A stretch of 64,000 nt of DNA, from the IMG/VR virus record IMGVR_UViG_3300042326_002445, positions 124,001-188,000 of that record. One strand, 5' to 3'. Shown here one piece after another: positions 18,001-64,000 of this stretch. How positions within the stretch are numbered: position 1 is the stretch's first letter; each line of letters starts with the position of its first letter. A program made the translations under genes and the position numbers. The notes beneath the pieces were generated by a model. That model made no database searches. It saw only the letters and a program-made list of their open reading frames with translations, and was not told where the DNA came from.

Positions 18001-20884
18001 TGGTAATGATAGATTTGTTATTACTGGAAATAGTGGAAATGATAGTAGTGGCGCATTTACTTATGTATTTAAGTTTAAATCAAATGGACAACAGGACGCT
18101 GACTTCTTTACTGGTCCGGGCATGGTCTATGAGTCAAAAATAAATGATATGGCAGTTACAGGAATAAACGACCTGTGCAACCAGTCATTTAAGTATCAAG
18201 TTTGGATGAGCAACGATGCAAGTATTATAGCGATAGGTAATCATAGATGGGATGCTCAGGCAGATGAGGTAAGTCCAAACGGCGAACCTCTTCCAGCTTT
18301 GTTCTACATAGATTTGTATAAAAAGCAAGTAACAGGATCTAGTGTCTCATATACTAAATTGCTAGAGCAAGGTCTGTCTCCTTCTTCTACAAGTAATGGT
18401 GCGCCAGTTGACGTATTTTGTTCTGCTATTTGGGGTGTAGCTAATGGCTCTAACAATTCTTTATATGATATATATGTGTGTTCTGGCATAGATCCAGATA
18501 CTGACTATTTAGATTATTTAGATTCAAATACCGCTAATTATAATGCTTCAAATTTTGAAAGACGTTTAGGCAGAGTGACTGTTTTCACTGCTTCAATTCC
18601 TTCCGGCAATGGAGCTGTAAAAAGAACAATAGAGCTAAGCGATATCGTACCTCCCACAGATCCTACTTTTAGTGAAAATAATAAATCATTTGCTAATTTG
18701 AATTTCTGGACTATGACGCCAGTAAGCGCAAAGAACGGTAGTTGTGGTTTAATGTTCTACAACAATACACTTGTTGCTTCTTCTTTGGGTCACCTTATGA
18801 AGATGAGTCCATCTAATTCTCAAGGCTCTGGTTGGAATCTTGATAGTATTGTTGGAGGATCTCCAGTTCCTAATGTGTCAGTCAAAAGAGTTTTAACTCC
18901 TTATTCCCAATACGGGTATGTTGGAAATACAAATAATACTAACAATATAACTTATGCAGATAATTCTGATATCTCAGTCATGTCTACGGTATCAGTACCA
19001 ACAGTAAACGCTTCTGCTTCTCCTGGATTTAATAAATTAGCATCCAAGATAGCATTTATTGAACTTTCAATTGACAACAATCCATATAGAAAAATATTTT
19101 CTATATCTAACTATACATCGTTGGTTGTTGGGAATGCTGATGTATCTCAAGTTGGCGTATTTGACGTAAATGAAGATATGAGTAGTAGTATTTGTTATCC
19201 AGCATATTCTGCTCTAAGTGCAAAAAGATTTGGCTACACATCTGGTCAGCCAAATCCAGAAACTCAAATATATAACCCAAGTATAAAGTCTTGGATTTAT
19301 GCATATGATTTGTCAAGCAGTCTTGGAGACGGAGAGTTGCAATATTCTGGATACGAATATACTTCAGATAACGAAGCTCATATTTTAGTAAAGCCACCTG
19401 TTCCAGATATAGAAAAGAAGCAGTTTTATTTTGGAGGCAATGAATTCTTGCCACTAGACGGGAATAATGTTTACCGTGATTATCACAATCAAATAGATCA
19501 GATAAAAGGCACTCTGATGCAGATGGACTGGAATGACGTTTCCGGCATCTTGTGGTGGGGAACTAATGACATATATGTGATGAGATCATACAAATATGAT
19601 CAGCACTATTCTCCATCTACTTCTGATATATTGTTGGAAAATTATGCAGCAAACAAGACTTATTATAAGAGTTTATCTTTGGGTATTCAAAGTGTTAACA
19701 AAAATGCTATGGTAAAATTCTCCATGCCAAATAATAGTAACCAATTAGTGGCAAATCCGGCTTGTGGAGACAACGATTATATTGGAACTAGTGGGTGCGG
19801 ATTGACAGGACCAAAAGTCATTACTGTTTCTGCAGTAACAAATTATGGCACTTTTGATTTAATGCATCAAAATTTTACATCTATAATACCGTTATTAAGA
19901 TCTAGAGAAAAACTTGGATTACAACGTTGTGTAGTTGTTTTAAATGACTTTACTGATCATATGAATGAACAAATATACAGAGATTCAGGATTTGGTTTTA
20001 ATAATGTAATTCCATTCTACAATTATTCTGCATCTAAATTTTCAAATCCATATAGAGATTACGCATTAGACATGTTTATAGATGATTCTATGAGTTTACT
20101 TTATAGTAAATCTGCATTGCAAATTAATCAGGGTGGTTTTTCTATGCCTAATATTAGTATACCAAGATGTGAAGGTAATATAGTTTTTGCTAGAAAATCA
20201 GTGTATGGATTATATAATACAAAATGGAATTATTTGATCAAGGATTTCGCTGGGTGCTTTGATCCAAACCATGGATGCATATATAATGGTGATAGAATGC
20301 TTTTGATTAAGCTGTCTTACATATATGAAGATTCAGTGTCTGCATCACATCCAGAGGCAGAATGGTATTTTGCTCCTGTTCTGACGACTATTTCTAATGC
20401 AGACGTGCCTGATTACAAGCCATCAATGGGAGCTTGTGTTTGTTCAGGTGAAATGCGGAACGCTAGTCGCAAAGTGTCTAAGTGGAAAATGAATGGGTCT
20501 TCAGGAGGAAATGATAAGAATTTATTAGATATAATAACTGTAGGAATTGGGGATACTTCTCCGGCACCTATTAGGAATAAAATAAATACTTCTTCTAGTG
20601 AAAATTCATCAGTCAAAGATTTAGTATTGTGTGGAAAAATTAGTTCAAACTTTATTAACTATGCGCTAAATAAAACTGGTTCTGCAAACATATCTGAATT
20701 AATGACAAAGATTAAAAACAGTTTATATGACGTAATTGAAGGACAAAAGTTCATGGATCCTGCAGGATGCATACATATAGTCGATACAGATTCATCAGAT
20801 CAAATGGATAATGTCAAAGAAGAATTTATGAGAAAGTTTATGAATACATTTAATGGATTTTACCATATCATAAGAGGCGCATAA
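9041..20884 (+). CDS. giant protein (3947 aa) with RCC1-like and FG-GAP/integrin-like beta-propeller repeats; probable tail fibre/adhesin
   Basis: RCC1-like MSCGIDFIVGI and KLVCGDSFFAVY (about 10736-11107). FG...ISAP...G.G.VY-type repeats (about 11468-13000). Ser/Glu linker at about 9715-9790. Asn/Ser/Gly-rich beta composition. Confidence 0.7.
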   Translation: MIKIRKIIYWHFAIYAGDAETINPESLPNDSISTLDMGLNVDNPIIVNGSPNVRAFSASTGYEWLIDISVANGITRDSNDDDKRTTIRSNNPNASPGFVWFDLAVVELKAVLGNPIVVDTLEQLSLVKDDNNDGARVQVKYVLFGAHKEGETGAQLRNEPNAFFDATNIPNEVSSEGDQTHQQLVDAMSSKTFVDEDGVPNSFFINIKYQEEVTKIGCCNIDVSESSSSSSEESSSSSSEESSSSSSSSSTLESCSSGLTLRSQPSIHNDRRRIWAVRQTADVNISNNAIYEGNFFLGSGQVVRKNYIASELVYADVEDVLNGEKSWNEINWQHAGYISFRENKPYAMALHKDPIFNKSDLSHSDGNLCTYHAYDNNFDLPVSIQSISWDTRGYLWALCSGGAKDSTPVTSNVVNGIESTEGVYGLIPGGWKKYPADMLYFGGSNTGTSSEYEDLNSSSLTGEIFSMSWGCDRDKKNEFLSIIDSDLNISIRKNKNSNINFPEDDNIIGDDGTLLKASSIYSGIEKICIIELDTKLPYLLSYNSVDSDLKNAIDIERSNNTQYSYMSCGIDFIVGITSSSQVKIFVNRSGSEIPSQDDADDLQEFINDDISNGYSVKKLVCGDSFFAVYLSSSSGASKLYARGYINGVSIWDGSDYDSSFIKYSSWDLSETKPILDIDAFGSYLIVVYSEGLSSSSNKSVYYTVSTVLSDLPIHNTSSASSSNTVDFIDYEFLNQLRKIYLDNTSNVIDEWANLTTRTSLISSKGLLGYNTDIYSNNLSGKINIFENSEYLTHPYFAQSQNIESRMQVDSGMFGYDVSSFVWQNESYLAISAPTEGSLLGANNGGILGQQNGQHGRGAIYIFKRYDKGFKVIQKIQHPDANAIAFGKQICLFATKDASDTSVMSLVCSYRGNTSDYTRIYYWNDVDQLFEWSELSDGLMTVGGLNLDPSTTDVSIFEIKRISDISISISCFTNNNKTGYAQFINTSNNITLINQCSGSYVKLSSFNNLSFGARFGLSCVYEPTVGGVTVAVGYPTFNSAYLSSSIISFIDSVEEDSLEIKPPDNALIQQGNGAVMLFYLNGALTSFESDVNGPLYKIIEGSNFNPNVSTKPYFGYDIDADYKHIVISSPYDTGYSAVGESSNIQEGGSVRVFEFNQPSALGERDVFDASQSIINLNSLSQFNVPQQVYQLGGGAYSLQWQKKKFGKFVKLISNKILISACDDDLVIGPSAQSGSYGNVFMLDKNKSGTWSFTGCYYDAHKGDRFGHKIEVLSSSPSNDQNDFIAFISAPGNMTSAKALNGFSQNAVVGNTDYRYGAGIVKSVVVSGSKALGILPSRIPSVLVNQDDNVSAEYFIKSSALGLKHVAHDISSSVANSRYVWKYYPARLLEKSAIKTSINENSIPSFKLGKFIKDPVFAEAEDFASTYSDIGAFTLSNTASNVSDISIANLSLYDKENLNIRVMEMHPRPYRTVDASMSSPDQEDSAAANLPQQIRSDYFDFATPTFNELNDNVYLYAPIISPQSDRWRGSIDNTNSFAIAPVRANRWIVPISKISNDNYSIFIDGIAVWNPTSASVEYNISGGYYFNSSPFIRSSTSPHTDVTGNPLIKPYNGTINSGFWWSTRNYISPGCVQLVDSSTEGHMVVWPNFNLPQGTSSANTNWGASITSFSGTENFYLGKLSIKPGALSSDKTGVDACKIDKGYFWGLKLADGSYNVFINAYNTSTSVTGHRLHQTSKYLTWSGCTVAEDRNTNSTEYSSVYTGYMPSYESYDFNLGHILSYPPINFRCSTGNTRPYNQTLGGASTIDAIKLAPNGSTHALYLNAVGWNNTLMNVGVKDIIIHGHYNYHGFQKSNNTGDTNQISTIADRRSQIVTFVSGYGSKIYSINGNNNGPSYFAPSIKFTCILDQRLSSYKSWKNNFGGLADWNTSGNPYSAWGKVAKNPSHFANSFTNNPSWVTNSYPNSFNARVAPTDTMYMVDLFWDYDPDSNTPSPSQIRAAIFSSNFEGNFTDVYDNMLLPKKTERGLAQSDFNLFPIRAYPLNRNQLTHLSCTVCPQVLHIGEAVFFTGARDPQNDSATAYDDSRSAYFSASQNLSSSTCSNALRVEYNTSYINIVSCKTFTDGIGLVVGSNTNESGVHLSSFIGSSGLGSSWCSSSSSSYINNFSYKYKTILYPSITSIDHFRPSAAGFSYWDNTGTSTNTSLATVGALYNGGGPSLLQWYSHFASVFTPNGVSGPESNGTIGEYAPTYYTLQGSYNLPYLYNASNGNSISFWSRYRYNNTNAQTLLDKFPATLNGLVGNYFATNPVYPKLGKHSSFKYPYKTNMLTGRGRNVQVSVLGAELRSISRDEIVYQNEFIYRKLSYHRQNSSGTVNESGAEFSPVHSIDTVGSVNASASNLGSYVNNQNTNGDTWSNDATNIVSLNISNRLSPEDNSNLSKSHIREEYQTDIATNTVNGDQISKQYRRFSLFDRVSPKDFFNNPETLVCLPTFGMPDLLDFAVTVNSFTHIFGLVNTFSDMPSGDYPDSGNVGAVGFTGNLTTNDKNNLGYNVDAGKQSAFWKAIKNGLAHVIDVNSSVISTSQGQRILTVTILASLNGNTWSANSPSKHSFGWKNNISTQNIFGGGLICAVITAKLDINGEVSSVKSTFANSEATLSGSIKRSTVGTGPQVLPETSWCRMGIWLQPLLGTRKISKDNSPHYWPGNFPWSASSDIKYLGVNPGDQATSSTNYFHTSPGMIKVPINRSYMIKLGKHIMLKYNSGSGSEKYFAVIGPCVYRIENDELDKGPLWWANQNKSSCFKMPQYVWDSRPIVFQKFGLSFTDMSTINSANALFAFSAYSGEAQRMVQSFFRNDSYTQDFGANLVSEFAAYGTLNGGGGSQFPPNEQWFDYNSETEGFRIPVGVGAVNNSVAILGEGVGFNVSEGSKIHAFVFWRNAFYKIEPSASATSKKPKITQIPIIATYQDADGNPDSIATQLESAYSLHRLNGFFNGNDRFVITGNSGNDSSGAFTYVFKFKSNGQQDADFFTGPGMVYESKINDMAVTGINDLCNQSFKYQVWMSNDASIIAIGNHRWDAQADEVSPNGEPLPALFYIDLYKKQVTGSSVSYTKLLEQGLSPSSTSNGAPVDVFCSAIWGVANGSNNSLYDIYVCSGIDPDTDYLDYLDSNTANYNASNFERRLGRVTVFTASIPSGNGAVKRTIELSDIVPPTDPTFSENNKSFANLNFWTMTPVSAKNGSCGLMFYNNTLVASSLGHLMKMSPSNSQGSGWNLDSIVGGSPVPNVSVKRVLTPYSQYGYVGNTNNTNNITYADNSDISVMSTVSVPTVNASASPGFNKLASKIAFIELSIDNNPYRKIFSISNYTSLVVGNADVSQVGVFDVNEDMSSSICYPAYSALSAKRFGYTSGQPNPETQIYNPSIKSWIYAYDLSSSLGDGELQYSGYEYTSDNEAHILVKPPVPDIEKKQFYFGGNEFLPLDGNNVYRDYHNQIDQIKGTLMQMDWNDVSGILWWGTNDIYVMRSYKYDQHYSPSTSDILLENYAANKTYYKSLSLGIQSVNKNAMVKFSMPNNSNQLVANPACGDNDYIGTSGCGLTGPKVITVSAVTNYGTFDLMHQNFTSIIPLLRSREKLGLQRCVVVLNDFTDHMNEQIYRDSGFGFNNVIPFYNYSASKFSNPYRDYALDMFIDDSMSLLYSKSALQINQGGFSMPNISIPRCEGNIVFARKSVYGLYNTKWNYLIKDFAGCFDPNHGCIYNGDRMLLIKLSYIYEDSVSASHPEAEWYFAPVLTTISNADVPDYKPSMGACVCSGEMRNASRKVSKWKMNGSSGGNDKNLLDIITVGIGDTSPAPIRNKINTSSSENSSVKDLVLCGKISSNFINYALNKTGSANISELMTKIKNSLYDVIEGQKFMDPAGCIHIVDTDSSDQMDNVKEEFMRKFMNTFNGFYHIIRGA
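9722..9769 (+). repeat. 24-bp direct repeat x2 (TCTAGTTCTTCTGAAGAGTCTAGT) in a Ser/Glu linker
   Basis: Exact copies at 9722-9745 and 9746-9769. Confidence 0.95.
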
Positions 20885-23800
20885 TGATTAGAAACCCATT
20901 TGAAACTACACAGTATGCGTCTAATTTTTTAAAAGAAAATATTATACTAGATTCTTCTGGAATTGGATTAACTGGCATAGACGTTTTAATGCAATTTCTT
21001 GTTAATCAGACAAGGATACGTCAAGAGGCAATCAGGATAGGTTATATTTCTAATAATCCTGCTAAAATAGACGGCGAAGATTACAGTCAAATAAGTTTGC
21101 TAGGACTTTCCTTTGATACGCCTCAGGGAATATATGATACTTCTCTGCTGATTGTAAATGCTGTTAAGCAAATGTTTGCTGGGCATCCATCTGGTTTGTA
21201 TGAAAAAGTTGCATATAGACCATCAATTATACAGTATCAAAATCCAGATGACGAAGTTTACGTATTGAGGGCAGGTGGATTTTTTCATAAAATAGGTGAC
21301 CCAAGTTCTGAAGCAACTACAATTGGAGACGATTATTTTGAGTATTTTGATGAAATTGTTGATGGAGATTATTTGACAAGTGATGATATTGATCGATTTA
21401 ATAATCCTCCATCTTTCGATAATCCATCAAGCCCTTACGCAACTCTTAATGAATATTTAAAGGATCAAGTTAAATGGGTTAACAGTGCTATTTCAGTTCT
21501 AAATAAATTAAAATTTATAAATAATAAACTTGTATTTACTTATCCATTTGCCGACATTGCATTTGGCACAGGATGTTCTTTTACTAAAACAATTAGTTCA
21601 ACAACAGCTCCAGACTCTAACGGCAAGCCAGTTGAAATAATACTAGACATGTCAGAGGTCGTGGGCTCCTGTATAGAAAGCGGCACTGATTCTTATGGTT
21701 ATATATGCATAAGATGGAGGAGCATGGGGAACGGCTCAAGATTTGTCATCATGCCTACACTGGGCTCAAATGCTCAGCAAACAGAATTTTTGAGAAAACC
21801 TTTGTGGGGCGCAGCTGTAGTCACTCCTTCGTCTGACCAACCATATGTTCACAGTAGTTCTCAAGGTCAAGGCTATTTAAGTTCTTCAAATTTTATTGAA
21901 TACGCTTCTTCTGATGAAATATTAAAAACATGGGATCCAGAAAGCGGAAATGTTTATGATCGTCCTGTAAGTCCAATTTTGAGATCAGGATGTATGAACG
22001 CTCCATGTTGCACCACAAACAATAATACAAATAAGCCTCCGTTCAGAGAGGGTGGAAATGATGCTAATTCTGATTTTGCCTGTATCTTAATAGATAAAGC
22101 ACTTTTTTCTACAGGTACAGGTTCTGAATGGGATAACAAAATTAGAATAGTTATTTTTTCTGGCTGTCAAAGTACGGGTGAAAATACTTCTTGGGAACTT
22201 GAGTTAAACTGTTTAGCATGCAACAACTGCAACAGCGATCTTTCTATTTGTGGCGGCGTTGCTTCTTCTAGCTCTAGTTCTGAAAACTTTAATTTTGGCG
22301 TATTTGTACTTGATGATCAGAATAAAATTGGTAAAATAGATCTTATTACTGGCAACCTGTCTGGAAGAATATTAAGAATAAAAAATGATGAAGGTAACAC
22401 TTTAGATGATCAAATACATGATATTGATTTTGACGATGAAGGAAATCTTTATGGTCTTGGAACTTCTGGCATTTTATATTTGATAAATAAAATAAATGGA
22501 CATGCAGATATTGTCGGAGACTCTGGACTAAGGAATACGAGCGGTCTTGGTTTTGGTAAAGATGGAAAATTATACACGGTTAATAATTCGACTTTATGTT
22601 CTTTAAATACTATAAATGGCGGTAGTACGTCAATAGGAAATATCGGTTACACTGGGAACGGAGATATATGTAGTGCTAAGTCTGGCACAAACAGATTGCT
22701 GGTGTCTGCCAAAAATGGTAACTCTAATATATTATTAGAAGTTGCAATAGGAACAAGCGGCGTTACTTCATCAGTAAAACTTTCTGTTGTTCCTAGAGTT
22801 TTTGGTTTGGCGAGAGAGCGGGGATCTTCTACCCCTCAACCTGTAGCGATTGCTGATCAAAAAATATATGCCTTTAATAGATGGGACACGGGCAATGCTT
22901 CAATGGTGGCTATATGTGATTTTTCACAATCTGGCTTATGTTGTGGCGTAGGAGCTGCATATTGGGATGGAGACTTTGAAGACGATAACGCTTTTAGGCT
23001 AACAGCAGAAGATTGTTCTGTCATACCAGTATGGTTAATATGTGAGCCTACAGCGAGTGGACAGCCCGTAAAGCTTGTAAAGATAGATGTAAAAACTGGT
23101 AATATTTTATCTCAAATAGATGTAGGTGGAAGCTACTCTGGTAGTATACCTATGGATATAGCGGTAAACGACACAGGAGAAATTTACATCAACGACAGCG
23201 ACAGGCTGTATCGCGTTGATCCTAATACGGGTATTGCTACAATAGTAGGCAATATAACATTCTCCACTCCGCAATACGCACCAATATTATCTGGTTTATC
23301 TTTTAGTAAAGACAATGTTTTGTACGGTTTTGCCGCCGATGGATATTTCCCGCCAGGCCCTCAGGCCTTAGAGAAATTTCCATTATTTACAATTGACACT
23401 CAGACTGCAGTTGCTTCTGTAGCCTGTGACGATTTTGGAATTGGCTGCAGTGGTGATGCTGCCGTATGGACAAATGATCTTTTAGAAAATTACTTTTTTA
23501 TTATAGGCTCTGGAGAGGTAAATGATCAAATTTATATTTCAAGATATGATTCAGCTGACCAAGAATGCATTGGTGAGTTAATTACTACTTCTGATGAATT
23601 TACATACGGAAATAAAGTTTGGGCAATTACAAATGCAAAAGACGGATTTTTATATGTAATTGTTGGTGAATCTAATAATAAAATTATTAAAATTGACCCA
23701 AATACTTATAGTTGGATTGATACTGGATTGAATGTTCAAAATATAGGAGTTGCTCACGGGGCTGCTTGGGCTCCTAATGATTTAGTGTGTGTAGGTGTAG

Positions 23801-30568: not shown

Positions 30569-30570
30569 GA

Positions 30571-43952: not shown

Positions 43953-44039
43953 GGACAGATGTCCGAGTGGTTGAAGGAGCAGCATTGGAAATGCTGTTTA
44001 CGGGAAACCGTAACGTGGGTTCGAATCCCACTCTGTCCG
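43953..44039 (+). tRNA. tRNA-Ser(GGA), CCA not encoded
   Basis: Acceptor GGACAGA/TCTGTCC, anticodon arm CAGCA-TTGGAAA-TGCTG, long variable arm, T-arm GTGGG-TTCGAAT-CCCAC, discriminator G. Confidence 0.95.
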
Positions 44040-44052
44040 CTATGGAGTTTCT

Positions 44053-47114: not shown

Positions 47115-47143
47115 TATTTATATTTTTCGAGGACTTTTGGTCC

Positions 47144-51197: not shown

Positions 51198-52093
51198 AGA
51201 TAGATTATATTGTTTTACATTGGAATAGGCCTTATTTTGCAGAAATTAATGTAAAATTGGCAAAGCTTTATTTCCCTTTCATTAGAAATTTTATACTTCT
51301 TGACGATGGCTCAGAACCAAATTGTATTGAAATTTTAAAGAAAGAATTTACTGAAGTAATAACGAGTAAAAATAATAAAAATGAGTGGAAAAACGGCAGT
51401 GTTGGTTATTTGTTGGAAAATTTTTTTACACAATCAGATGCGGACTTTATAATATTTACAGAAGATGATTTTTTACCGTGTTTGAATTATTTTGATGATT
51501 CAGAAACAGAAAACACTCTAATATCTCCTGATGTCCTGTTTAAACAGTGTGTGGTTGCAGAGAATTTAGAAACACATATACACAACATAGGCAGTCCTTT
51601 TTTCTATTTAAATTTAGGAAAATCTAATTATGGATGGAAGTCTTTAGACGCATACGAGTACAATGATAATTTTTTAAGAGTAATTCCGCATAAAGAAAAA
51701 AGAATTTATAGCAATTGGCCTTGGATAATGGGTAAAAATGTGTTTAAAAAAGCTATGAAAAATTTGAAAGATGCACCCATTTGGCAAATAGAAAATATAA
51801 TTGACGGTAACATGAAAAAAATATCTAGAGTTAAGCCTTTGTGTGTAAAGCAAAAAATGTTTATACATGCTGGCTTCATATGCACAACGAGAAAAGACGC
51901 ATTTTCTCAAATAGGCAAATTTAATAAAAATAGACTCACTAGTGCTAGTAACTTTACTGGAGAGTCTCAGACTAGTCTAGATGCTTTGCGTAGTGAATAT
52001 TTATCTAAATATTTTTCTGGAAAAAGAATAAGCATGGAAGATCTTTTTACAAAAGGACTTCATCATGCTTTGAAAAATTTTATCACTTCATAG
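51194..52093 (+). CDS. GT2-like glycosyltransferase, paralog of the upstream gene
   Basis: VLHWNRP...LLDDGSE...FTEDD; shares YSNWPW and MFIH.G with the upstream ORF. Confidence 0.7.
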   Translation: MKIDYIVLHWNRPYFAEINVKLAKLYFPFIRNFILLDDGSEPNCIEILKKEFTEVITSKNNKNEWKNGSVGYLLENFFTQSDADFIIFTEDDFLPCLNYFDDSETENTLISPDVLFKQCVVAENLETHIHNIGSPFFYLNLGKSNYGWKSLDAYEYNDNFLRVIPHKEKRIYSNWPWIMGKNVFKKAMKNLKDAPIWQIENIIDGNMKKISRVKPLCVKQKMFIHAGFICTTRKDAFSQIGKFNKNRLTSASNFTGESQTSLDALRSEYLSKYFSGKRISMEDLFTKGLHHALKNFITS

Positions 52094-55043: not shown

Positions 55044-55661
55044 TTATCTTATATTCCTATAGTCTTTAAATGTGTTTTCTATATCAGAATGATCTGCTCT
55101 TTGCCAAGCGAGGTGAGGCCTAAAGCCATAACACGGCATCTTTTTCTGCAAAAATGCTAAATGCAAATCTGCTGGCTTAGTAAATATCACGTTTTCACTA
55201 AAACGTTCCATAATCATTTCTAAGGCTGTTCTTTTGATGGCGTAGCAATGGGTCGTGTATGTCTTTCTAAGGCGATGTACGTGCCTGTTTATCATCATTA
55301 TTGGATTATGTCTATGACTTCCACCTAGATAAAGCATTTGCCAATCTTTTGGCACCATAGGATAGTATTCCTGAAATCTTTTACCTACATTTCTATCGAA
55401 TTCTACGTCATCTTCCATAATAAGTGCTGTTTTTATTGTCTTGTCTGCCAGTATCATCTCAAACACTTTTCTATGAGACATGCAGCAGCCAGCAGCTCCT
55501 GGTTTTAGTTCACCTATATTTGTCAGAGTGTGACCGTCAACTGCGTCTACAAAATGAACGTCTAATTGCAATTCTGAGAAGATTTGTGAGCATCTTTCTC
55601 TACGATCTGTTCGCCTCTGCAGATTAATGCAGTAAATTTTATTAAAATCTCTTAGTAACAT
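55044..55661 (-). CDS. GT25-family glycosyltransferase
   Basis: KIYCINLQRRTDRR, FVDAVDG, GCCMSH, IMEDDV, WQMLYLGG, TTHCYAI. Confidence 0.85.
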   Translation of the reverse strand: MLLRDFNKIYCINLQRRTDRRERCSQIFSELQLDVHFVDAVDGHTLTNIGELKPGAAGCCMSHRKVFEMILADKTIKTALIMEDDVEFDRNVGKRFQEYYPMVPKDWQMLYLGGSHRHNPIMMINRHVHRLRKTYTTHCYAIKRTALEMIMERFSENVIFTKPADLHLAFLQKKMPCYGFRPHLAWQRADHSDIENTFKDYRNIR

Positions 55662-55695
55662 ATATGATGTTTTGTCGAAAAAATATAACAATACT

Positions 55696-59146: not shown

Positions 59147-59147
59147 C

Positions 59148-59777
59148 ATGAATGCCATAAACTTTGATAAGTCTATTATGCAGCTTGTTTCTTATCCAAG
59201 AACCGGTAGTCACTATGTTCGCATAGTAATAGAAGACATTACAAAAAGGCCTTGTGCTCCTACTTCTTTTTTGGGTTTTGATAAATTTGAACCATGGGGG
59301 TTTCACCTGCATGACAGAATTGTGGGAAATGGAGATGAGGGCATAACTTCTGGATTTGATAAAGTAATATACTTATATAGGAATCCAGTAGATACCATTT
59401 ATTCACACATAAAATATCAGAATGAGAGCGATTGGAGATCAATAGCAGAAGAGTATAAAAATCATCTCATGAGATGGCTTTACAATAATCACGATTGTAA
59501 AAAAATGATTTTTGTTAATTATGACATATTGCTAGATAAGCCGATAAAAGAATTTAAAAGAATTTTAGAATTTATGGATTTCTCAGTCAATGATGATGAT
59601 TTGCAAAAATCTATAAGCAGAACAACAATATCTAGAGTTAGGGCATTAACGGAAAAGTTAGATAATAAAGTAGTAAGTCAAGATCATTTTAATGGTCAGT
59701 ACTTAATCGATAAGTCAATTTTTATTTCAGAAAATTCAGAAGAAATAAATAAAATGTTTCAAGGCATTTATAAATAA
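59148..59777 (+). CDS. sulfotransferase-domain protein
   Basis: 5'-PSB-like LVSYPRTGSH, 3'-PB-like YRNPVDTIYS, VNYDILL. Confidence 0.75.
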   Translation: MNAINFDKSIMQLVSYPRTGSHYVRIVIEDITKRPCAPTSFLGFDKFEPWGFHLHDRIVGNGDEGITSGFDKVIYLYRNPVDTIYSHIKYQNESDWRSIAEEYKNHLMRWLYNNHDCKKMIFVNYDILLDKPIKEFKRILEFMDFSVNDDDLQKSISRTTISRVRALTEKLDNKVVSQDHFNGQYLIDKSIFISENSEEINKMFQGIYK

Positions 59778-60743
59778 ATGAAAATATATAAAAAAATAAA
59801 CTTTATTGACTACAATATATCTCATGCGGAAACATGGAAACACGCTAGTATAATGTGCGGTTGCAGAGTTCCTAAAGATTTGATGCACAATTATTATACA
59901 CCTCCAAATAATATATGGTTAAAAAAATGTAATAATTTTTTTGAAGATGAAGTAAATTCTGGAATATCTGTATTCACAGACCATGCAATTGTGGAAGTGA
60001 ATAAATACAGATCGCAACATAAAGTTGCTTTAATTTTAGAACCCCCAATTGAGGCAAGGGGTATTTATGAAAAAGCCGTCAGTCTTCAGAATAAATTTGA
60101 GATTATATTTACTTTTCGAAAAAAATTAATAGAAAAAAATCCTGAAAAATTCAAATTCATGCCAGCTGATTTTGTTACATTAGAAGATGATGCGCATAAA
60201 ATTCATACAAAAAATAAACTGATCTCTATGATATATTCTGGTATGAGAGGTCACAATAGAGATCTTAGGCATCAGGTTGGTAATATTTTGAGCGACAAAA
60301 TTACATTATTTGGTGGAGGTAGTCCAAGCGGAGATGTGCCTTTAAAATCTGATACTTTAAAAGACTATATGTTTTCTGTAGTAATAGAAAATTCAAAACC
60401 TTTTGACTACTATTTTACTGAAAAAATATTAGATTGTTTCATAACAGGTAATATCCCTATATATAATGGCTCTCCATCAATAGGAGATTTTTTTGACAAA
60501 AGGGGATTTCTCACATGGTCGTCTATAGACGAACTTGCAAATATTATTGATTCTATTTCAGAAGATAAATATTATGAAATGCTGCCTTATGTAAAAATAA
60601 ATTATGAATTAGCAAAAAAGTACGTTAGTGCTGATGACGTAATGAGTGATTTAATTTATGAAGCACTTCACAATAAAACGATAAATACTATGGAAAGATT
60701 TATATACAAAAATTGGAGTAATAATGAAAATAATCAATTATGA
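59778..60743 (+). CDS. GT10 (alpha-1,3/4-fucosyltransferase)-like protein
   Basis: DYMFSVVIENS...YFTEKILDCFITGNIPIY.G. Confidence 0.75.
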   Translation: MKIYKKINFIDYNISHAETWKHASIMCGCRVPKDLMHNYYTPPNNIWLKKCNNFFEDEVNSGISVFTDHAIVEVNKYRSQHKVALILEPPIEARGIYEKAVSLQNKFEIIFTFRKKLIEKNPEKFKFMPADFVTLEDDAHKIHTKNKLISMIYSGMRGHNRDLRHQVGNILSDKITLFGGGSPSGDVPLKSDTLKDYMFSVVIENSKPFDYYFTEKILDCFITGNIPIYNGSPSIGDFFDKRGFLTWSSIDELANIIDSISEDKYYEMLPYVKINYELAKKYVSADDVMSDLIYEALHNKTINTMERFIYKNWSNNENNQL

Positions 60744-61428
60744 TACAAGCAAGTATGGATTTAGAGACTTAGTTCAATCAATATATGATGTTGATTTGTC
60801 TAATCTTGATACAGTTGATGCAAAAAAGAATTTAACTTTAGGTAATGATACAAAAACTTCACTACATAAAGAGTTTTATAAAAAAATAGATGCTGGTTGG
60901 CCAGAATTTATGAACTTATATACTTCTTTTGTATCAGAAGTTGTGCACCCTATGTTTGAGGATGACGTTCTTGTTTATCAAAAAACTCCAGGCATAAGGT
61001 TTTGCAGACCTGGAGCTAAGGCGGTATATAAGTGGCACTCAGATGGAGATGCTGACCATAAGCACCCTCTTGGAGAAGTGAATGTGTTTTTGCCTTTGAA
61101 CAAATGCTTCGACACAAATTCTGTATGGTTTGAGACTATACCTGGCATGGGAGATTGGCGTCCACTAGAAATGGATTATGGTCAATTGTTTATAGGTTAT
61201 TGGAATCAGTGCAGGCATGGAAACAAAGAAAATTCTACGGGAAAAACGAGAGTCAGTTTTGATTTTAGAGTTATTCCAGGTTTTGCTTACGATGAAAATT
61301 GTACATTGCAGAGTTGCACAACTAAGCAAAAATTTGTTATTGGAAGTTATTATGAAAAGATAAAAAGAGATCCGACACCATCTATGTATGACCCAGTGGA
61401 AAATGCAAAACTAGGAGCAGCATGCTAG
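60724..61428 (+). CDS. StrG-like / Fe(II)-2OG dioxygenase-fold protein
   Basis: YQKTPGIRF, WHSDG (HxD), NVFLPL, HGN...TRVSFDFR. Confidence 0.65.
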   Translation: MKIINYDTSKYGFRDLVQSIYDVDLSNLDTVDAKKNLTLGNDTKTSLHKEFYKKIDAGWPEFMNLYTSFVSEVVHPMFEDDVLVYQKTPGIRFCRPGAKAVYKWHSDGDADHKHPLGEVNVFLPLNKCFDTNSVWFETIPGMGDWRPLEMDYGQLFIGYWNQCRHGNKENSTGKTRVSFDFRVIPGFAYDENCTLQSCTTKQKFVIGSYYEKIKRDPTPSMYDPVENAKLGAAC

Positions 61429-62087
61429 ACCCAAATCAGTACGAAGCCAGTCTTCTCAAGCATATGATGAATCGGTATGATTTGAATGATCCATGGGAAG
61501 TCGTTGATACTTTTGAAAATATTATTGCTAGTTACTCTGGAAGTAAATATGCAGTATCAGTTGACAATTGTACTGATGCCATGTTTTTGTGTCTTAAGTA
61601 TTTAAAGGCTGATGGAGTGATTGAAATACCCAAAAGAACATATGTATCTGTTCCATGTACAATTATAAATGCTGGCTGCAAAGTTAAATTTATTGATATA
61701 GCGTGGAGTGGAGCCTACAAGCTTAATCCTTACAATGTTTACGATTCAGCAACAAGAATGAAAAGAAACATGTACGTAGAAGACTCTTATTATTGTTTGT
61801 CTTTTCATAGGAGAAAGCATATACCGATAGGCAAAGGCGGAATGATATTGACTAATAATAAAGATGCCTATGAATGGTTTAAGGTTGTCAGATACGAGGG
61901 AAGACACATGGACAGGTTATACAAAGATGATCATTTTGATCAAATTGGATGGAATATGTATATGACTCCAGAACAGGCGGCAAAGGGCATATATTTATTC
62001 GATAAACATGTAGTCGATGACAACCCAGATTTAGAAACTTCTGGTATACATAAGGACCTATCAGAATATTCCATTTTCACAGCTTGA
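61422..62087 (+). CDS. DegT/DnrJ/EryC1/StrS PLP aminotransferase, short form
   Basis: FENIIASYSGSKYAVSVDNCT, YDSA, SFHRRK, GGMILTN; only 221 aa. Confidence 0.8.
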   Translation: MLDPNQYEASLLKHMMNRYDLNDPWEVVDTFENIIASYSGSKYAVSVDNCTDAMFLCLKYLKADGVIEIPKRTYVSVPCTIINAGCKVKFIDIAWSGAYKLNPYNVYDSATRMKRNMYVEDSYYCLSFHRRKHIPIGKGGMILTNNKDAYEWFKVVRYEGRHMDRLYKDDHFDQIGWNMYMTPEQAAKGIYLFDKHVVDDNPDLETSGIHKDLSEYSIFTA

Positions 62088-62095
62088 GGTTTAAT

Positions 62096-62845
62096 ATGTT
62101 CTCTAAAAAAGATGTAATTAAAAAAATATTGTTGACTTGTAGTTCAGCAAAGGAAGGTCATGTTCCAAGTGCGCTTTCTATATTGGATATTTTATATGTT
62201 GTATATAGAGACTACGTATCCTTAGAAAAAGGAAGATTTGTACTATCAAAAGGTCATGCATCAATAGGGCTTTACGCAATTCTTGATTATTTTAGCATGC
62301 TTGAGGAGCCTATTGAAAACTTTTGTAAGTTTGATTCAAAACTTGGAGGACATCCATCTTGCAGACTTAATCATGTTGAATGCTCGACTGGATCATTAGG
62401 GCATGGTATGCCATTCGCTCTTGGAATGGCAATGAGTGAGAAAATCAAAGGTTCTGATAAAAAAGTTTTTACTATTATTGGAGATGGGGAATCGAACGAA
62501 GGGACTATATGGGAAACAGCCCTTCTTGCTAGCCATCATAAAGTAAATAATTTCTGTTGCATATTAGATCATAATCATTCTACCGACAGGGCTCTTGATA
62601 TAGGCAACATGATTCAAAAATTTAAATCCTTTGGTTGGATGTGCAGTAAAGTGAACGGTCATGATTTGACAAACTTATCTAAAGTTCTTAAGAAATCAGA
62701 TCCTGAAAAGCCGCACTTCATACTCGCTCATACGGTAAAAGGAAAAGGCATTAAATGCATGGAGAACAATCCAGAATGGCATCATAAGTCTCCAAGTCAA
62801 ATAGATTGTGATAACATGATTAAGGAATTATATGAAAGCGTCTAA
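62096..62845 (+). CDS. transketolase N-terminal (TPP-binding) subunit
   Basis: GHVPSALS, FVLSKGHAS, STGSLGHG, GDGESNEG..WE, TVKGKG. Confidence 0.9.
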   Translation: MFSKKDVIKKILLTCSSAKEGHVPSALSILDILYVVYRDYVSLEKGRFVLSKGHASIGLYAILDYFSMLEEPIENFCKFDSKLGGHPSCRLNHVECSTGSLGHGMPFALGMAMSEKIKGSDKKVFTIIGDGESNEGTIWETALLASHHKVNNFCCILDHNHSTDRALDIGNMIQKFKSFGWMCSKVNGHDLTNLSKVLKKSDPEKPHFILAHTVKGKGIKCMENNPEWHHKSPSQIDCDNMIKELYESV

Positions 62846-63677
62846 GAGTTTAATTATTAATACTAGAGAATATGGCATGTTTTCTAGTCTTCTGCAAATT
62901 ATAGATAATTTAAAGTTTTGCGAGCTTAATAATATGAAGCCAATATTAAATATTGGTGATAAATTTTTGTATCGCGATGGTCCAGAAAACCCTTGGAGTC
63001 ATTATTTTAAGCCTATCAATGACGGAGTCGCAGAGGGAGAAGTTTACGAAGTTTCTCAGTTAACAAAAACAGCTAACTTCTTTCTAGAAAATTATGTGAT
63101 GACTCAGCCATCCATTCATGACTATAGGCTAAAATTGTGGAATATGATTGCAGACAGAGACGATCTTCTGGCTCATCGCCAGGACATAAAAGCAATGCTT
63201 GATAAGTACGTTAAGCCATTGCCTGCAATTACAGATGAAGTAAAGAAATTTGCCAAAAAACATTTTAAGAAAGATAGTGTTCTCTCAGTTCACATCAGAA
63301 GTACGGATTATAAGTTTGTGAATCTTCCCTTGCTTATAGATAGAATCAAAAAGATTCAGCAGCAAAACAATTACGACAAGATATTTGTAGCTTCAGATAG
63401 CTTAGAGGCTATTATGGGTATATACAACGCATTTCCTAATGTTTGTTACTATGAAACTAATTTAAGGTGCGAAAAAATTGATTCGCCCAAGCCCCTGTGC
63501 CACATTGTATTTGGTCAAGACAAAATAAGGCATGGGAGAGACGCTATTGTAGAGTGCCTACTACTTTCTAAGGGTAAAGAAATAGTGTGTATTAATTCTA
63601 ACGTTGCTGGAATGGCTTGCTATCTAAATCCAGAAATGAAAATACATTTAATGCAAAGACAAGTGCATGGGGGATGA
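62832..63677 (+). CDS. NodZ/O-fucosyltransferase-like (GT-B) protein
   Basis: SVHIRSTD, IFVASDS, AIVECLLLS...SN. Confidence 0.7.
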   Translation: MKASKSLIINTREYGMFSSLLQIIDNLKFCELNNMKPILNIGDKFLYRDGPENPWSHYFKPINDGVAEGEVYEVSQLTKTANFFLENYVMTQPSIHDYRLKLWNMIADRDDLLAHRQDIKAMLDKYVKPLPAITDEVKKFAKKHFKKDSVLSVHIRSTDYKFVNLPLLIDRIKKIQQQNNYDKIFVASDSLEAIMGIYNAFPNVCYYETNLRCEKIDSPKPLCHIVFGQDKIRHGRDAIVECLLLSKGKEIVCINSNVAGMACYLNPEMKIHLMQRQVHGG

Positions 63678-63687
63678 TAAATTGGAA

Positions 63688-64000
63688 ATGAGTCAAATTG
63701 TAAGTATTTCAGAATCTATAAGAAAAAAATTTCCCACTAGATGGGAGTGTCAAACTCCAAGAGAATTTTTTTACATGTATCATTTAATAGATGAGTGCAA
63801 CAATATTGATGGAGCTTTTGCAGAAATAGGTGCTTATCAGGGTTTTACAAGTGAATTTATTTTCTTAATTAAGAAAAAAGAAAAACGTTTTTTTGTCTGT
63901 GATACGTTTACTGGCTTGCGAGACGTTGGAGAGCATGACCGTTATTTAGATATACCTAATGGTGGTTTAAGTGTTGGAGTTGAAGAATTCTGCAACATGA
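63688..64000 (+). CDS. TylF/MycF-like O-methyltransferase, 3'-truncated by the window edge; not in the ORF track
   Basis: Hand translation: MSQIVS...IDGAFAEIGAYQG...FFVCDTFTGL..., open to the end of the window. Confidence 0.7.
   Translation, partial: MSQIVSISESIRKKFPTRWECQTPREFFYMYHLIDECNNIDGAFAEIGAYQGFTSEFIFLIKKKEKRFFVCDTFTGLRDVGEHDRYLDIPNGGLSVGVEEFCNM

Follow-up and report, generated by a model that had tools for sequence, protein, structure and literature searches.

Virus-encoded enzymes glycosylate the fibrils of Megavirinae (PMC10117803, PMC9614988) and the capsid and tail tube of mycobacteriophages (Freeman 2023, as cited in PMC12619734). Secreted bacterial carbohydrases have pure poly-Ser linkers of up to ~110 residues, and these runs are described just as linkers (PMC2386152, PMC3124978). 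The locus considered here encodes giant proteins with poly-Ser linkers as well as a large set of glycan genes. The window, i.e., the 64-kb stretch of DNA that was analysed, is part of a 223,646-b IMG/VR contig of a lake-water phage whose true genome size is probably ~370–400 kb.

Giant proteins and their serine tracts

Thirteen giant genes fill 45% of the 224-kb contig, a genome-wide array that a preliminary description of this DNA had missed. Serine runs of the type found in the 2671-aa protein P0001 occur in 6 of the 13 giants, P0001 among them, and the residues in tracts of at least 6 Ser add up to 425 across the giants. Three giants abut in the window (Table 1). The first of them, P0003, has no Pfam or PHROG match and no family, and no PHROG match was obtained for the mid-size ORFs between giants.

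The preliminary description had counted about nine poly-Ser tracts of up to about 38 residues in P0001, separating Cys-bounded modules, and a further tract in the 3947-aa P0002. These claims are borne out. P0001 has ten runs of at least 6 Ser (6 to 38 residues), located at aa 461 (length 6), 976 (10), 996 (38), 1524 (8), 1752 (17), 1838 (12), 2039 (16), 2056 (6), 2141 (29) and 2659 (6); P0002 carries S6-EE-S6-EE-S9 at aa 226–250 (nt 9716–9790) and S6 at aa 2152. Cysteines flank most P0001 runs, with a Cys within 12 residues of all seven tracts of at least 8 Ser. Across all giants, a Cys is found near the tract in 12 of 17 cases (random expectation 28%) and on both sides in 6 of 17 (random 3%).

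At a serine content of ~15% the 38-residue run cannot have arisen by chance. In the tract DNA, tandem units of 9 or 12 nt combine TCN and AGY codons, for example (AGT TCA TCA TCT)n, and this mixing of codon boxes inside 12-nt units, which we count in favour of the model proposed below, suggests selection for serine at the protein level. Together with a second tRNA-Ser (ACT) at genome position 206032–206123, the tRNA-Ser set of the phage covers TCT/TCC and AGT. L006, assembled independently from another sample, contains P0001 letter-identical, tract lengths included. Unitigs from four lake runs match the P0001 modules at 100% identity and break at every Ser tract, the S10/S38 linker included, so that tract lengths cannot be confirmed from unitigs. 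Among the runs listed as containing the P0001 gene there is no RNA run.

Table 1. Features of the window (nucleotide positions refer to the 64-kb stretch).
Feature	Residues	Position	Strand	Remarks
PseB/CapD-like epimerase/dehydratase, 3' end (320 aa)		1..246	+	Polysacc_synt_2, Epimerase, GDP_Man_Dehyd
P0003, giant ORF, 1936 aa		3234..9044	+	First of three abutting giants
P0002, giant ORF, 3947 aa		9041..20884	+	Ser/Glu tract near N-terminus
P0001, giant ORF, 2671 aa		20884..28899	+	Modules strung on poly-Ser linkers
P0001 N-terminal domain	1-460	20884..22263	+	55% identity to relatives' orthologues (L049 included)
Beta-propeller-like module	467-975	22282..23808	+	DUF4394 E 1e-6
P0001 longest linker	976-1033	23809..23982	+	S10, short Cys-containing spacer, S38
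Hint domain	1185-1340	24436..24903	+	Profile and residue evidence
Dockerin-like module 1	1769-1837	26188..26394	+	Dockerin_1; Cys-clasped; between S17 and S12
Dockerin-like module 2	2062-2140	27067..27303	+	Dockerin_1 E 7e-9, above cut-off
P0001 C-terminal domain	2170-2660	27391..28863	+	30% identity in orthologue (alignment)
DUF2201 metallopeptidase-like + MoxR-type AAA ATPase		29351..32193	-	Just downstream of P0001
tRNA-Ser, anticodon GGA (reads TCC/TCT)		43953..44040	+	ARAGORN
GT2 glycosyltransferase		47099..47902	+	Glycos_transf_2 E 4e-19
GT2 + methyltransferase-like + GT1 fusion, 798 aa		47863..50259	+	Pfam
Two paralogous GT2-like ORFs, 313 and 299 aa (50256, 51194)		50256..52093	+	Glycos_transf_2 E 6e-4, 0.05
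GT25 glycosyltransferase		55044..55691	-	Glyco_transf_25 E 3e-18
Sulfotransferase		59148..59777	+	Sulfotransfer_1 E 2e-10
GT10 fucosyltransferase-like		59778..60743	+	Glyco_transf_10 E 4e-6, above cut-off
Carbohydrate-cluster 2OG-Fe(II) oxygenase-like ORF + short DegT aminotransferase (61422)		60724..62087	+	Profiles
Transketolase N-terminal (ThDP-binding) subunit		62084..62845	+	Transketolase_N E 3e-29
TylF-type sugar O-methyltransferase, start		63667..64000	+	TylF, Methyltransf_24 on 213-aa product

Modules of the 2671-aa protein

Between its Ser runs P0001 carries an N-terminal domain, a beta-propeller, a Hint domain, two dockerin-like modules and a C-terminal domain. Its orthologues are P0021 and the L049 counterpart; P0022 is a shorter positional counterpart (a Hint homologue). 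The N-terminal domain is an orphan beyond these relatives, with nothing found in Pfam, PDB or a search of 5.8 billion proteins. The propeller-like module, which is missing from P0021, also matches DUF5074, DUF6923, Kelch_6 and, weakly, NHL/tachylectin, every match including DUF4394 being below the gathering score.

All 154 homologues found in the homologue search fall on the Hint region. The family profile matches bacterial intein-like domains and inteins in PDB (E down to 2.5e−16), and family members carry Intein_splicing, PT-HINT and Hint_2. The region also matches phrog_38766 (E 3e−6) and is the only part of the giants with a match to a PHROG named 'virion structural protein'. The earlier label 'self-cleaving' holds in part: the domain retains Cys1, TFEH (TxxH) and the penultimate His, but Thr replaces the terminal Asn.

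The preliminary description had missed the dockerin-like modules, of a Ca-binding type, between the Ser tracts. Module 1 is 91% identical to aa 4638–4706 of the 5596-aa giant; module 2, with weak matches to dockerins in PDB, lies between S16/S6 and S29. Altogether four giants have eleven Dockerin_1 matches (nine to eleven modules, as some overlap). The C-terminal domain may be an SGNH/Ape1-like esterase into which a beta-sandwich is inserted, a lead suggested by an Atlas feature pointing to GDSL/Ape1_N clusters (score 0.81) and by a low-confidence structure model (pLDDT 40.6) whose top Foldseek matches are Ape1 peptidoglycan O-acetylesterases (E 2e−4, TM 0.24–0.33).

The glycan toolkit

About 17 glycan genes had been described at 47144–64000. 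Profiles support 11 of the 22 ORFs, eleven ORFs are without assignment, and the 'GT47-like' and 'NodZ-like' calls have E-values of only 0.04 and 0.11. The epimerase placed at base 1 is real; the window contains the ~82 C-terminal residues of this 320-aa Polysacc_synt_2/epimerase protein (gene start at genome position 123284; Pfam matches precomputed on the identical ENA contig). The GT2 at 47099 is 91% identical in relatives L023 and L024. The 798-aa fusion matches the GT2 domains of chondroitin and heparosan synthases in PDB as well as Methyltransferase type 12, and its length is 786–798 aa in every lineage seen. The two shorter GT2-like ORFs cross-match as paralogues. The oxygenase-like ORF matches TIGR04324 (E 2e−7, below cut-off) and the aminotransferase DegT_DnrJ_EryC1 (E 4e−21). 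The pyrimidine-binding partner of the transketolase subunit (Transket_pyr) lies just beyond the window at genome position 188310, and the island extends ~15 kb past the window end, to about genome position 203000.

The whole contig carries ~36 glycan genes, including ~20 transferases (GT2, GT1/GT4, GT10 in three copies, GT11, GT25 in two copies, and Maf/sialyltransferase-like) plus O-methyl- and sulfotransferases. Predicted nucleotide-sugar synthesis covers 6-deoxyhexose/fucose-type sugars, amino sugar and nonulosonic acid. The fucosylated, sulfated and methylated glycan guessed earlier agrees with this predicted chemistry, to which amino sugar and nonulosonic acid are added. Two MptE/Maf-like ORFs (E 1e−7 and 2e−5, below the Pfam gathering score; proteins of only 250–265 aa) adjoin NeuB and a CMP-sugar synthetase, and the Cst-II-like/MptE-like transferase has a weak Cst-II match. 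This Maf-like/nonulosonic-acid cluster sits outside the window and had been missed. A 533-aa GT1 finds its best PDB match, over the generic C-terminal half only, in the Ser-Asp-repeat O-GlcNAc transferase SdgB (E 9e−5); DUF1975, the defining domain of SdgB/GtfA-type enzymes, is absent. A hydrophobic 19-mer occurs in only 7 of 168 ORFs, multi-pass proteins in none, and no toolkit gene encodes a membrane span.

We also note that GT genes bracket the upstream giant-gene block, likewise missed in the preliminary description: a GT1 gene lies directly against the start of the first giant, and 22 nt past the 3965-aa giant a GT2-GT1-GT2 series begins on the same strand.

Conservation among relatives

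The preliminary description had proposed co-occurrence of poly-Ser giants and GT islands as a check, and no counter-examples were found. Ser linkers are present in all four relatives whose counterpart giant was read, the Hint domain in three of the four, and five further lineages share a syntenic island core (helicase identity 83, 79, 53, 46 and 44%). The core is therefore a clade trait rather than a recent cassette. All co-occurrence data come from one clade, hence the co-occurrences are not independent events. The linkers recur at module boundaries, with varying length and module order: P0021 has Ser runs of 51 and 44, L049 of 42, 21 and at least 181, and P0022 of 8–11. In the most distant relative with a giant read, at 46% helicase identity, the linkers are of a Ser/Pro type, (PSSSSEIP)n, and dockerins are present as well. 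In the 369-kb relative, a 3613-aa counterpart of P0002 lies ahead of the P0001 orthologue; in the 81-kb relative the DUF2201/MoxR-type pair is likewise directly downstream of the giant.

Proposed model and alternatives

We tentatively propose, at somewhat less than even confidence, a joint model in which the giants are virion fibres or are docked to the virion, phage transferases O-glycosylate their linkers, and the Hint domain performs N-terminal cleavage. Because none of the 13 giant N-termini shows an evident signal peptide (read by eye), the giants would stay cytoplasmic until lysis. Before assembly, soluble phage transferases would use nucleotide sugars directly to O-glycosylate the Ser linkers, resembling the bacterial SdgA/B, GtfA/B and Maf enzymes and the fibril glycosylation of Megavirinae. 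Glycosylation would stiffen the floppy linkers into mucin-like rods that resist proteases, and the giants would be incorporated into the virion or attached to it as long fibres, or be docked there via their dockerin modules. An N-S acyl shift at Cys1185 would lead to cleavage on the N-terminal side only, or would hand the upstream portion over to a nucleophile; without the terminal Asn, splicing is not expected. That the giants belong to the virion as fibres is something we infer rather than observe, as the 224-kb contig showed no recognisable capsid, tail, portal or terminase gene.

The main rival, unlikely on balance but serious, is that the toolkit remodels LOS/LPS core, O-antigen or capsule intermediates of the host on host lipid carriers, e.g., to block superinfection or adsorption of progeny during a long infection, the Ser tracts being sugar-free spacers. 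GT25, GT10, GT11, NeuB and a sialyltransferase-like protein are the classical set for LOS/LPS decoration in bacteria, and the phage set (two GT25, three GT10, GT11, GT2s, NeuB, CMP-sugar synthetase and the Cst-II-like/MptE-like protein) matches it, which is why we take envelope remodelling seriously. LOS/LPS transferases are also soluble or peripheral and need no membrane span, hence the lack of membrane proteins is still compatible with a lipid-linked acceptor supplied by the host. GTs are moreover common auxiliary genes in huge phages, where they are counted as envelope-associated (bioRxiv 10.64898/2026.10.24.761521), and bacterial carbohydrases use poly-Ser linkers as spacers (PMC2386152). 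However, the contig showed no flippase, polymerase, ligase or initiating phosphoglycosyl transferase, a spacer would not need Ser runs as pure and as long as these (38, 51, at least 181), GT genes directly bracket the giant-gene block, and synteny of the island core holds down to a helicase identity of 44%, whereas host-surface cassettes are typically variable.

The giants may instead be non-virion proteins that form a dockerin-assembled, cellulosome-like lectin/enzyme complex. This complex would leave the cell at lysis or be presented by infected cells, would target cell walls or polysaccharide matrices, and could have glycosylated or unglycosylated linkers. The eleven Dockerin_1 matches in four giants, the propeller/lectin-like modules, the Ape1-like esterase lead, the lack of a nearby virion hallmark gene and the typical presence of poly-Ser linkers in secreted carbohydrases (PMC2386152) fit this idea, yet we judge it improbable: there is no cohesin on the contig and no evident signal peptide (0 of 13, by eye), the PHROG matched by the Hint region has the annotation virion structural protein, and 45% of the contig would be a costly investment in non-virion proteins. 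Less probable still is that the soluble toolkit glycosylates other virion proteins (capsid, tail tube, decoration) from the missing part of the genome, as happens in mycobacteriophages and chloroviruses, and that the Ser linkers are not acceptors. While ~45% of the genome, with all head and tail genes, lies outside the contig, and capsid and tail tube are the acceptors in the known phage cases (Freeman 2023, as cited in PMC12619734), the GT genes adjoin giants and no recognisable head or tail gene, and the giants offer 425 Ser in tracts of at least 6. Very improbable, finally, is hypermodification of phage DNA with glycans by part of the toolkit, in the manner of T-even phages and of the 5hmC glycan systems that other phages have. 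A dCMP deaminase (window 32868–33416) and a T4 gp1-type dNMP kinase (genome ~118047) are present, and phage GTs can place complex glycans on DNA (bioRxiv 10.1101/2023.12.21.572611). Against it, the contig has no thymidylate-synthase/dCMP-hydroxymethylase homologue and, in a search without positive control, no Tet/JBP dioxygenase, and ~36 genes far exceed the gene use of DNA-glycan systems. Nor are fucosyl-, sulfo- or nonulosonic-acid enzymes known to take part in DNA modification.

If the joint model of glycosylated, virion-associated giants is true, this phage would build a sugar coat on its own serine linkers.

Giant proteins with serine tracts

The window covers bases 124001-188000 of its source record, a linear IMG/VR virus of 223,646 b with an estimated completeness of 55% (CheckV). 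Giant ORFs account for 45% of this 224-kb contig (13 ORFs of 783-5596 aa, 101 kb). Ten of them form one block on the plus strand (genome 371-84881), interspersed with seven ORFs of 212-568 aa that have no PHROG match; the window holds three abutting giants of 1936, 3947 and 2671 aa (window 3234-28899). Searches of PHROGs with ten mid-size ORFs around the giants give no match, and for the three window giants the sole match is the Hint region of the 2671-aa protein, here denoted P0001. Inspected by eye, the N-termini of the giants show no signal peptide, and no LPXTG motif is found in their sequences.

Uninterrupted serine runs occur in 6 of the 13 giants and reach 29 to 41 residues in three of them (the 5596-, 2587- and 2671-aa proteins). 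The preliminary description had reported poly-Ser tracts in P0001 and in the 3947-aa protein, separating modules bounded by cysteines, and both observations are borne out: ten runs, 6 to 38 residues long, are present in P0001, the 3947-aa protein carries a further tract of the form S6-EE-S6-EE-S9, and a cysteine lies within 12 residues of all seven P0001 tracts of at least 8 Ser. Across all giants the same is true for 12 of 17 tracts, versus 28% at random. The anatomy of the giants, with their linkers and modules (see table), is both firm and unusual.

The tracts are built from tandem units of 9 or 12 nt in which TCN and AGY codons are mixed, which indicates selection for serine itself. The unit length and the mixed codon boxes likewise exclude a trinucleotide microsatellite subject to slippage, or a frame artefact. 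An assembly artefact is excluded as well: P0001 is identical to the letter in an independent assembly from another sample, and unitigs from four runs cover its modules at 100% identity, breaking at each tract as repeats do. Since assemblies break inside the tracts, such genes are probably under-recovered (cut or lost) in metagenomes, whatever their function. A scan of IMG/VR for (TCN)16 finds at least 119 stretches; most of the 80 examined are located in open frames of less than 200 aa and are microsatellite-like, and about 9 are located in ORFs of at least 230 aa. We note that TCT and AGT are among the three main tract codons, and that the phage tRNA-Ser genes cover TCT/TCC and AGT. These genes adjoin tRNA genes for Asn, Thr and Tyr; the giants are rich in Ser, Asn and Thr.

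Features of P0001 and of the surrounding genome (window and genome positions refer to the 64,000-nt stretch and the full record, respectively)
Feature	Location	Strand	Remarks
P0001 (2671 aa)	window 20884-28899	+	
Orphan N-terminal domain	P0001 aa 1-460		
Beta-propeller-like module	P0001 aa 467-975		DUF4394, DUF5074, DUF6923, Kelch
Linker	P0001 aa 976-1033		S10 and S38
Cys-rich module 1	P0001, between S38 and Hint domain		
Hint domain	P0001 aa 1185-1340		
Cys-rich module 2	P0001, after Hint domain		
Module without family match	P0001 aa 1532-1751		
Linkers and modules	P0001, after aa 1751		S17, dockerin, S12, module, S16/S6, dockerin, S29
C-terminal domain	P0001 aa 2170-2660		
MoxR-type AAA ATPase and DUF2201 metallopeptidase-like gene	window 29351-32193	-	just downstream of P0001
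Sigma-70-like factor, SET-domain protein, M43-type metallopeptidase, TilS, GMP reductase/IMPDH-family enzyme	window 33403-34765, 35971-36924, 38512-40387		between giants and glycan island
tRNA-Ser(GGA)	window 43953-44040		
Glycan island within the window	window 47099-64000		
798-aa fusion	window 47863-50259	+	GT2, methyltransferase-like, GT1
DegT ORF	window 61422-62087		221 aa
Two MptE/Maf-like ORFs, CMP-sugar synthetase, NeuB, HAD phosphatase, 533-aa GT1	genome 108708-113826		
NeuB-type synthase (PF03102) and CMP-sugar synthetase (PF02348)	genome 110215-111755		adjacent genes
tRNA-Ser(ACT)	genome 205790-206123 (tRNA region)		unusual A34 anticodon

Domains within the giants

An exhaustive HMMER search with P0001 returns 154 proteins, and every match is confined to the Hint region. 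A profile of P0001 and 35 homologues matches BIL domains and inteins in the PDB (E from 2.5e-16 to 1e-5); of these 36 members, 17 match Intein_splicing, 13 PT-HINT and 8 Hint_2. Cys1 (C1185) and the block B motif T-F-E-H are present, and the Cys as well as both His (block B and penultimate) are invariant in the alignment. The single-sequence AlphaFold2 model has a pLDDT of 30, and the assignment is therefore based on the profile searches; as a reading of the sequence we consider it solid. The terminal motif is V-H-T-G in P0001, V-H-S-G in two orthologues from relatives (P0021 and the L049 protein) and V-H-S-A in P0022, a shorter positional counterpart. Among the 150 Hint homologues listed, 55 end in H-N no more than 12 residues from the protein C-terminus. 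Since Thr or Ser takes the place of the terminal Asn in P0001 and all three counterparts, neither canonical splicing nor C-terminal cleavage is expected, and P0001 is excluded as a canonical intein, having neither the terminal Asn nor a +1 nucleophile. The domain would at most carry out an N-S acyl shift, leading to cleavage or transfer at the upstream junction without splicing; self-cleavage in P0001 is plausible to this extent.

The family Dockerin_1 has 11 matches in four giants, 5 of which pass the cut-off alone and two more together with their neighbours; all of these modules are flanked by Ser tracts. The match in P0001 (36.1 bits) is above the gathering score, and duplicated D-x-D/N-x-D-G loops are visible. 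P0001 and the 5596-aa protein share one Ser-dockerin cassette at 91% identity. In the present assembly the 1776-aa giant carries three cassettes in tandem (genome 15085-15621), versus two in the ENA assembly, a difference of 198 nt that corresponds either to copy-number variation in the population or to assembly collapse. For the first dockerin module of P0001 (window 26160-26424), three of four lake runs contain a unitig with seven substitutions, which stems either from the paralogue within the 5596-aa gene or from a variant strain. No match to Cohesin (PF00963) is found at E <= 1 on the contig, which covers about 55% of the genome.

The C-terminal domain of P0001 has no match in Pfam, and scans of IMG/VR for its relatives recover the same phage only. 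Profiles of the N- and C-terminal domains do not match any PDB sequence; a word-indexed homologue search with residues 1-460 and 2170-2671 likewise returns nothing, probably as Ser words swamped the candidates. Atlas features of the domain point to an Ape1-type SGNH esterase (0.81). Its AlphaFold2 model from a two-row alignment (pLDDT 40.6) matches Ape1 in Foldseek (E 2e-4, TM 0.24-0.33), and a block-I-like motif I-G-(Q/D)-(D/E)-S can be discerned by eye. The Atlas and Foldseek clues, both weak but concordant, hint, as a lead only, at an Ape1-type SGNH esterase with an inserted beta-sandwich. As to the giants being secreted carbohydrate-active enzymes, the esterase and lectin clues are weak and signal peptides are not seen.

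Genes for glycan synthesis

The part of the glycan island inside the window contains 22 ORFs, 11 of which have profile support. The roughly 17 glycan genes counted there previously are therefore not verified inside the window, and the calls 'GT47-like' and 'NodZ-like' reach only E = 0.04-0.11. The island continues past the window end to approximately genome 203000, with Transket_pyr, three epimerase/dehydratases, two more GT10, a GT11, a second GT25, three more GT2 and two FkbM-type methyltransferases. Overall, about 36 profile-supported glycan genes are found on the contig, many of them beyond the window. A GT1 gene abuts the first giant, a GT2-GT1-GT2 series (genome 84904-87471) starts 22 nt past the last giant of the block, and a gene for a PseB-like dehydratase extends into base 1 of the window.

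Matches of the two MptE-like ORFs to PF01973 (E 1e-7 and 2e-5) score 32.2 and 24.9 bits versus a cut-off of 34.6, and both ORFs are far shorter than Maf. Within the PDB, the 533-aa GT1 matches SdgB best, though weakly and over residues 255-350 only, in the generic nucleotide-binding half; DUF1975 (PF09318) has no match at E <= 1 on the contig. The 798-aa fusion has a length of 786-798 aa in every lineage seen and is reminiscent of A064R, a multi-domain transferase-methyltransferase of chlorovirus PBCV-1. The DegT aminotransferase ORF is shorter than its family (about 360 aa), and its match to the family falls into two parts, which may reflect truncation or a split with a neighbouring ORF. Hydrophobic 19-mers occur in 7 of the 168 ORFs of the contig, none of them multi-pass, and the approximately 36 glycan genes have no membrane span. 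Accordingly, neither a flippase, a polymerase or a ligase nor an initiating phosphoglycosyl transferase is encoded on the contig. The phage does encode its own soluble transferases together with sugar pathways, as expected of a virion-glycosylation system of the Megavirinae, chlorovirus or mycobacteriophage type.

Phage genome and relatives

Its gene content marks the virus as a huge phage, with genes for replication and repair (DnaB, primase, split PolIII alpha, clamp loader, RecA, UvrD, SNF2 helicase) as well as a sigma-70-like factor, IF3, CsrA, TilS, dCMP deaminase, a T4 gp1-type dNMP kinase and seven tRNAs. The ORFs are read with translation table 11, without need for an alternative genetic code. 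The 369,758-b contig of a relative (JGI 3300071641, Ga0620605_0000062; helicase identity 53%) fits a true genome size near 370-400 kb. No capsid, portal, terminase, sheath or tube genes are recognised on the 224-kb contig; the head and tail genes are probably located on the unseen part of the genome. An independent ENA assembly (230,189 b) stops about 130 b from the right end of the contig and reaches only 6.7 kb beyond its left end. It seems that both assemblies end at the same barriers, which may be repeats or regions that vary between strains.

At least 22 contigs, assembled from several lake samples of JGI and ENA, contain the same phage sequence, and more than 20 lake-water runs from 2020-2024 include it at 0.9-1.0 of the sampled words. 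Its word depth in several lake metagenomes is about 8-15x. No RNA run is listed for P0001, and a megablast search of INPHARED phages with window 29000-47000 gives zero matches. Used as a query for host prediction, the GMP reductase/IMPDH gene has a single match (36%, in a Desulfovibrionaceae MAG) that is uninformative on the host. Most genes in the interval between the giants and the island are syntenic in relatives. The MoxR/DUF2201 pair is also found directly downstream of the giant in an 81-kb relative, and the two genes may serve the giant in maturation or as chaperones.

The clade is defined here by helicase homologues. In relatives at 83% and 79% helicase identity the island is collinear. 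The 53% relative (the 369-kb contig) has the order GT25 ... 791-aa fusion-GT2, SNF2, DUF5856, IMPDH, TilS, sigma, and a 1984-aa giant that is preceded by one of 3613 aa. P0021, the protein of 1984 aa, is orthologous to P0001, with 55% identity in the N-terminal and 30% in the C-terminal domain; it contains the Hint domain of P0001, a single dockerin and two long Ser runs (51 and 44 residues), lacks the propeller and carries one module elsewhere. The orthologue in L049 (Ga0247841_10004615, locus 10001-14319) contains Ser runs of 42 and 21 residues, and the contig edge falls inside a run of at least 181 Ser. A fourth lineage encodes a 2705-aa giant and, behind it, a 999-aa Hint protein whose Ser runs comprise 8-11 residues; in the 46% relative, dockerins and (PSSSSEIP)n linkers are seen in the giant at the corresponding position (2485 aa), and the 44% relative retains the island core. 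The preliminary description had proposed to examine whether Ser-rich giants and glycosyltransferase islands co-occur in related phages. Ser linkers are present in all four relatives whose counterpart giant could be read, the Hint domain in three and the island core in five. Linkers and island core look like old traits common to the clade. The pattern leaves the proposed connection between the two standing; since the relatives are kin within one clade, it does not amount to an independent test of it.

Comparison with known systems

Glycosylation of surface fibres by virus-encoded enzymes is established for giant viruses of amoebae, with a toolkit of about 6-12 genes in Megavirinae versus about 36 in the phage. 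Like the phage, Megavirinae (Mimivirus and relatives) encode their own nucleotide-sugar pathways for rare bacterial-type sugars (PMC10117803, PMC9614988). Common to both are 4,6-dehydratases, DegT-type aminotransferases, methyltransferases, soluble transferases, a machinery conserved at the level of the clade, and long surface fibres as acceptor, the latter being a proposal in case of the phage. Megavirinae differ in their eukaryotic hosts and in fibril proteins that are not poly-Ser-linked giants; their glycans have been determined chemically, whereas the phage system is known here from its genes alone. In mycobacteriophages, cytoplasmic glycosyltransferases of the phage modify virion proteins prior to assembly (Freeman et al. 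2023, via PMC12619734). These systems comprise one to a few transferases acting on the C-termini of capsid and tail-tube subunits, without the sugar-synthesis pathways and giant proteins of the phage considered here.

Pure Ser runs of up to about 110 residues are known from the polyserine linkers (PSL) in carbohydrases of Saccharophagus degradans and Cellvibrio japonicus (Howard et al. 2004, via PMC2386152, PMC3124978). The phage giants share with these carbohydrate-active proteins the uninterrupted Ser runs between recognisable functional modules. PSL carbohydrases are of ordinary size and either Sec-secreted or lipoproteins, and PMC2386152 and PMC3124978 mention no glycosylation genes associated with them. 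The phage differs by giants of up to 5596 aa, Cys-clasped modules and, in a relative, a run of at least 181 Ser.

Serine-rich repeat proteins of Gram-positive bacteria are glycosylated by GtfA/GtfB. Similarly, the stalks of SD-repeat proteins are O-glycosylated by the GT-B enzymes SdgA/SdgB (PMC8561734). These adhesin stalks resemble the phage system in their long Ser-containing low-complexity sequence and in the SdgB likeness of one phage GT1; they undergo processive cytoplasmic O-glycosylation from UDP-sugars, comparable to what is proposed for the phage tracts. They differ in their SD or SA/ST dipeptide repeats, LPXTG anchor and dedicated export, whereas the phage tracts are pure Ser in proteins with neither LPXTG nor a long signal peptide; SdgA/B and GtfA/B also carry the DUF1975 insertion, which is absent in the phage. 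In bacteria, the Maf/pseudaminic-legionaminic set places nonulosonic acids on Ser/Thr of a cytoplasmic protein. Flagellin glycosylation islands have in common with the phage a NeuB-type synthase, CMP-sugar synthetase, PseB-like dehydratase, DegT aminotransferase and MptE/Maf-like ORFs, of which the phage has two. The phage ORFs are below the Pfam cut-off, are not accompanied by a flagellin and, at 250-265 aa, would constitute the catalytic core only.

The dockerin-like modules correspond to cellulosomal type I dockerins in their duplicated Ca-binding loops, Pfam significance and flanking linkers; they differ in being internal, closed by Cys pairs and in part tandem (three in a row), with no cohesin found. 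The Hint domain is related to BIL, pretoxin-HINT and Hedgehog-type domains by profile homology, Cys1, TxxH, the penultimate His and its position within a large modular protein of secreted type, and departs from them by the Thr or Ser in place of the terminal Asn in P0001, P0021, the L049 orthologue and P0022.

Possible roles of the glycan genes

Because the giants lack a visible signal peptide and the transferases are soluble, any sugars on the giants would have to be added in the cytoplasm from nucleotide sugars. Cytoplasmic glycosylation is also performed by GtfA/B and, on flagellin, by Maf. A precedent is provided by SdgA/B acting on Ser-Asp repeats (PMC8561734), and Megavirinae provide one for virus-encoded glycosylation from nucleotide sugars (PMC10117803, PMC9614988). 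It is quite possible, if short of probable, that the phage transferases O-glycosylate the Ser linkers, a functional link that we infer from several observations: the giant block is flanked by glycosyltransferase genes, the purity and length of the Ser runs are unusual, tRNA-Ser genes for the codons TCT/TCC and AGT are encoded by the phage itself, a Maf-like/NeuB cluster is present, and one GT1 has its (weak) best match in SdgB. Arguing against it, no transferase is directly tied to the tracts, the giants are only presumed to belong to the virion, DUF1975 is absent, and poly-Ser of bacterial carbohydrases is described solely as a linker in PMC2386152 and PMC3124978.

A further point against it is that GT25, GT10, GT11, NeuB and a sialyltransferase-like enzyme make up a set with which bacteria decorate LOS/LPS. 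The toolkit may serve to remodel glycans of the host envelope, a serious alternative that we consider somewhat less likely than linker glycosylation. That it glycosylates virion acceptors other than the giants is improbable. Glycosylation of phage DNA is most improbable, as neither a dCMP hydroxymethylase nor a Tet/JBP homologue is found on the contig. Separate from the question of the acceptor, the giants might be released rather than bound to the virion, which appears unlikely.

Should the linkers indeed be the acceptor, a huge freshwater phage clade might, tentatively, build a mucin-like coat. Poly-Ser rods of tens to hundreds of residues would be presented on giants docked through their dockerin-like modules, a phage-encoded cytoplasmic pathway would decorate the rods with fucosylated, methylated, sulfated and nonulosonic-acid O-glycans, and the Hint domain would process or ligate the fibre. 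Such a coat would be the phage counterpart of the Mimivirus fibril layer.

Significance

PSL linkers, dockerins, Hint domains and virus-encoded glycosylation are each already known. Their combination in a phage was not found in the literature searched: an array of giants that takes up 45% of a contig, modules clasped by Cys on Ser runs reaching at least 181 residues, a Hint domain without the terminal Asn, and about 36 soluble glycan genes that include a nonulosonic-acid branch. To our knowledge, glycosylation of virions by the phage's own enzymes has been established for no more than a few small sets of transferases, in actinophages. If the linker-glycosylation model holds, bacteriophages, too, would be able to carry a complete and autonomous protein-glycosylation factory, with poly-Ser named as its acceptor, and the soluble transferases would be a compact source for decoration with fucose, nonulosonic acid, sulfate and methyl groups. 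Poly-Ser linkers, for which PMC2386152 and PMC3124978 do not discuss any role other than spacing, would thereby gain a function, and there would be an explanation for the nearly half of coding capacity that some huge phages devote to giant genes.
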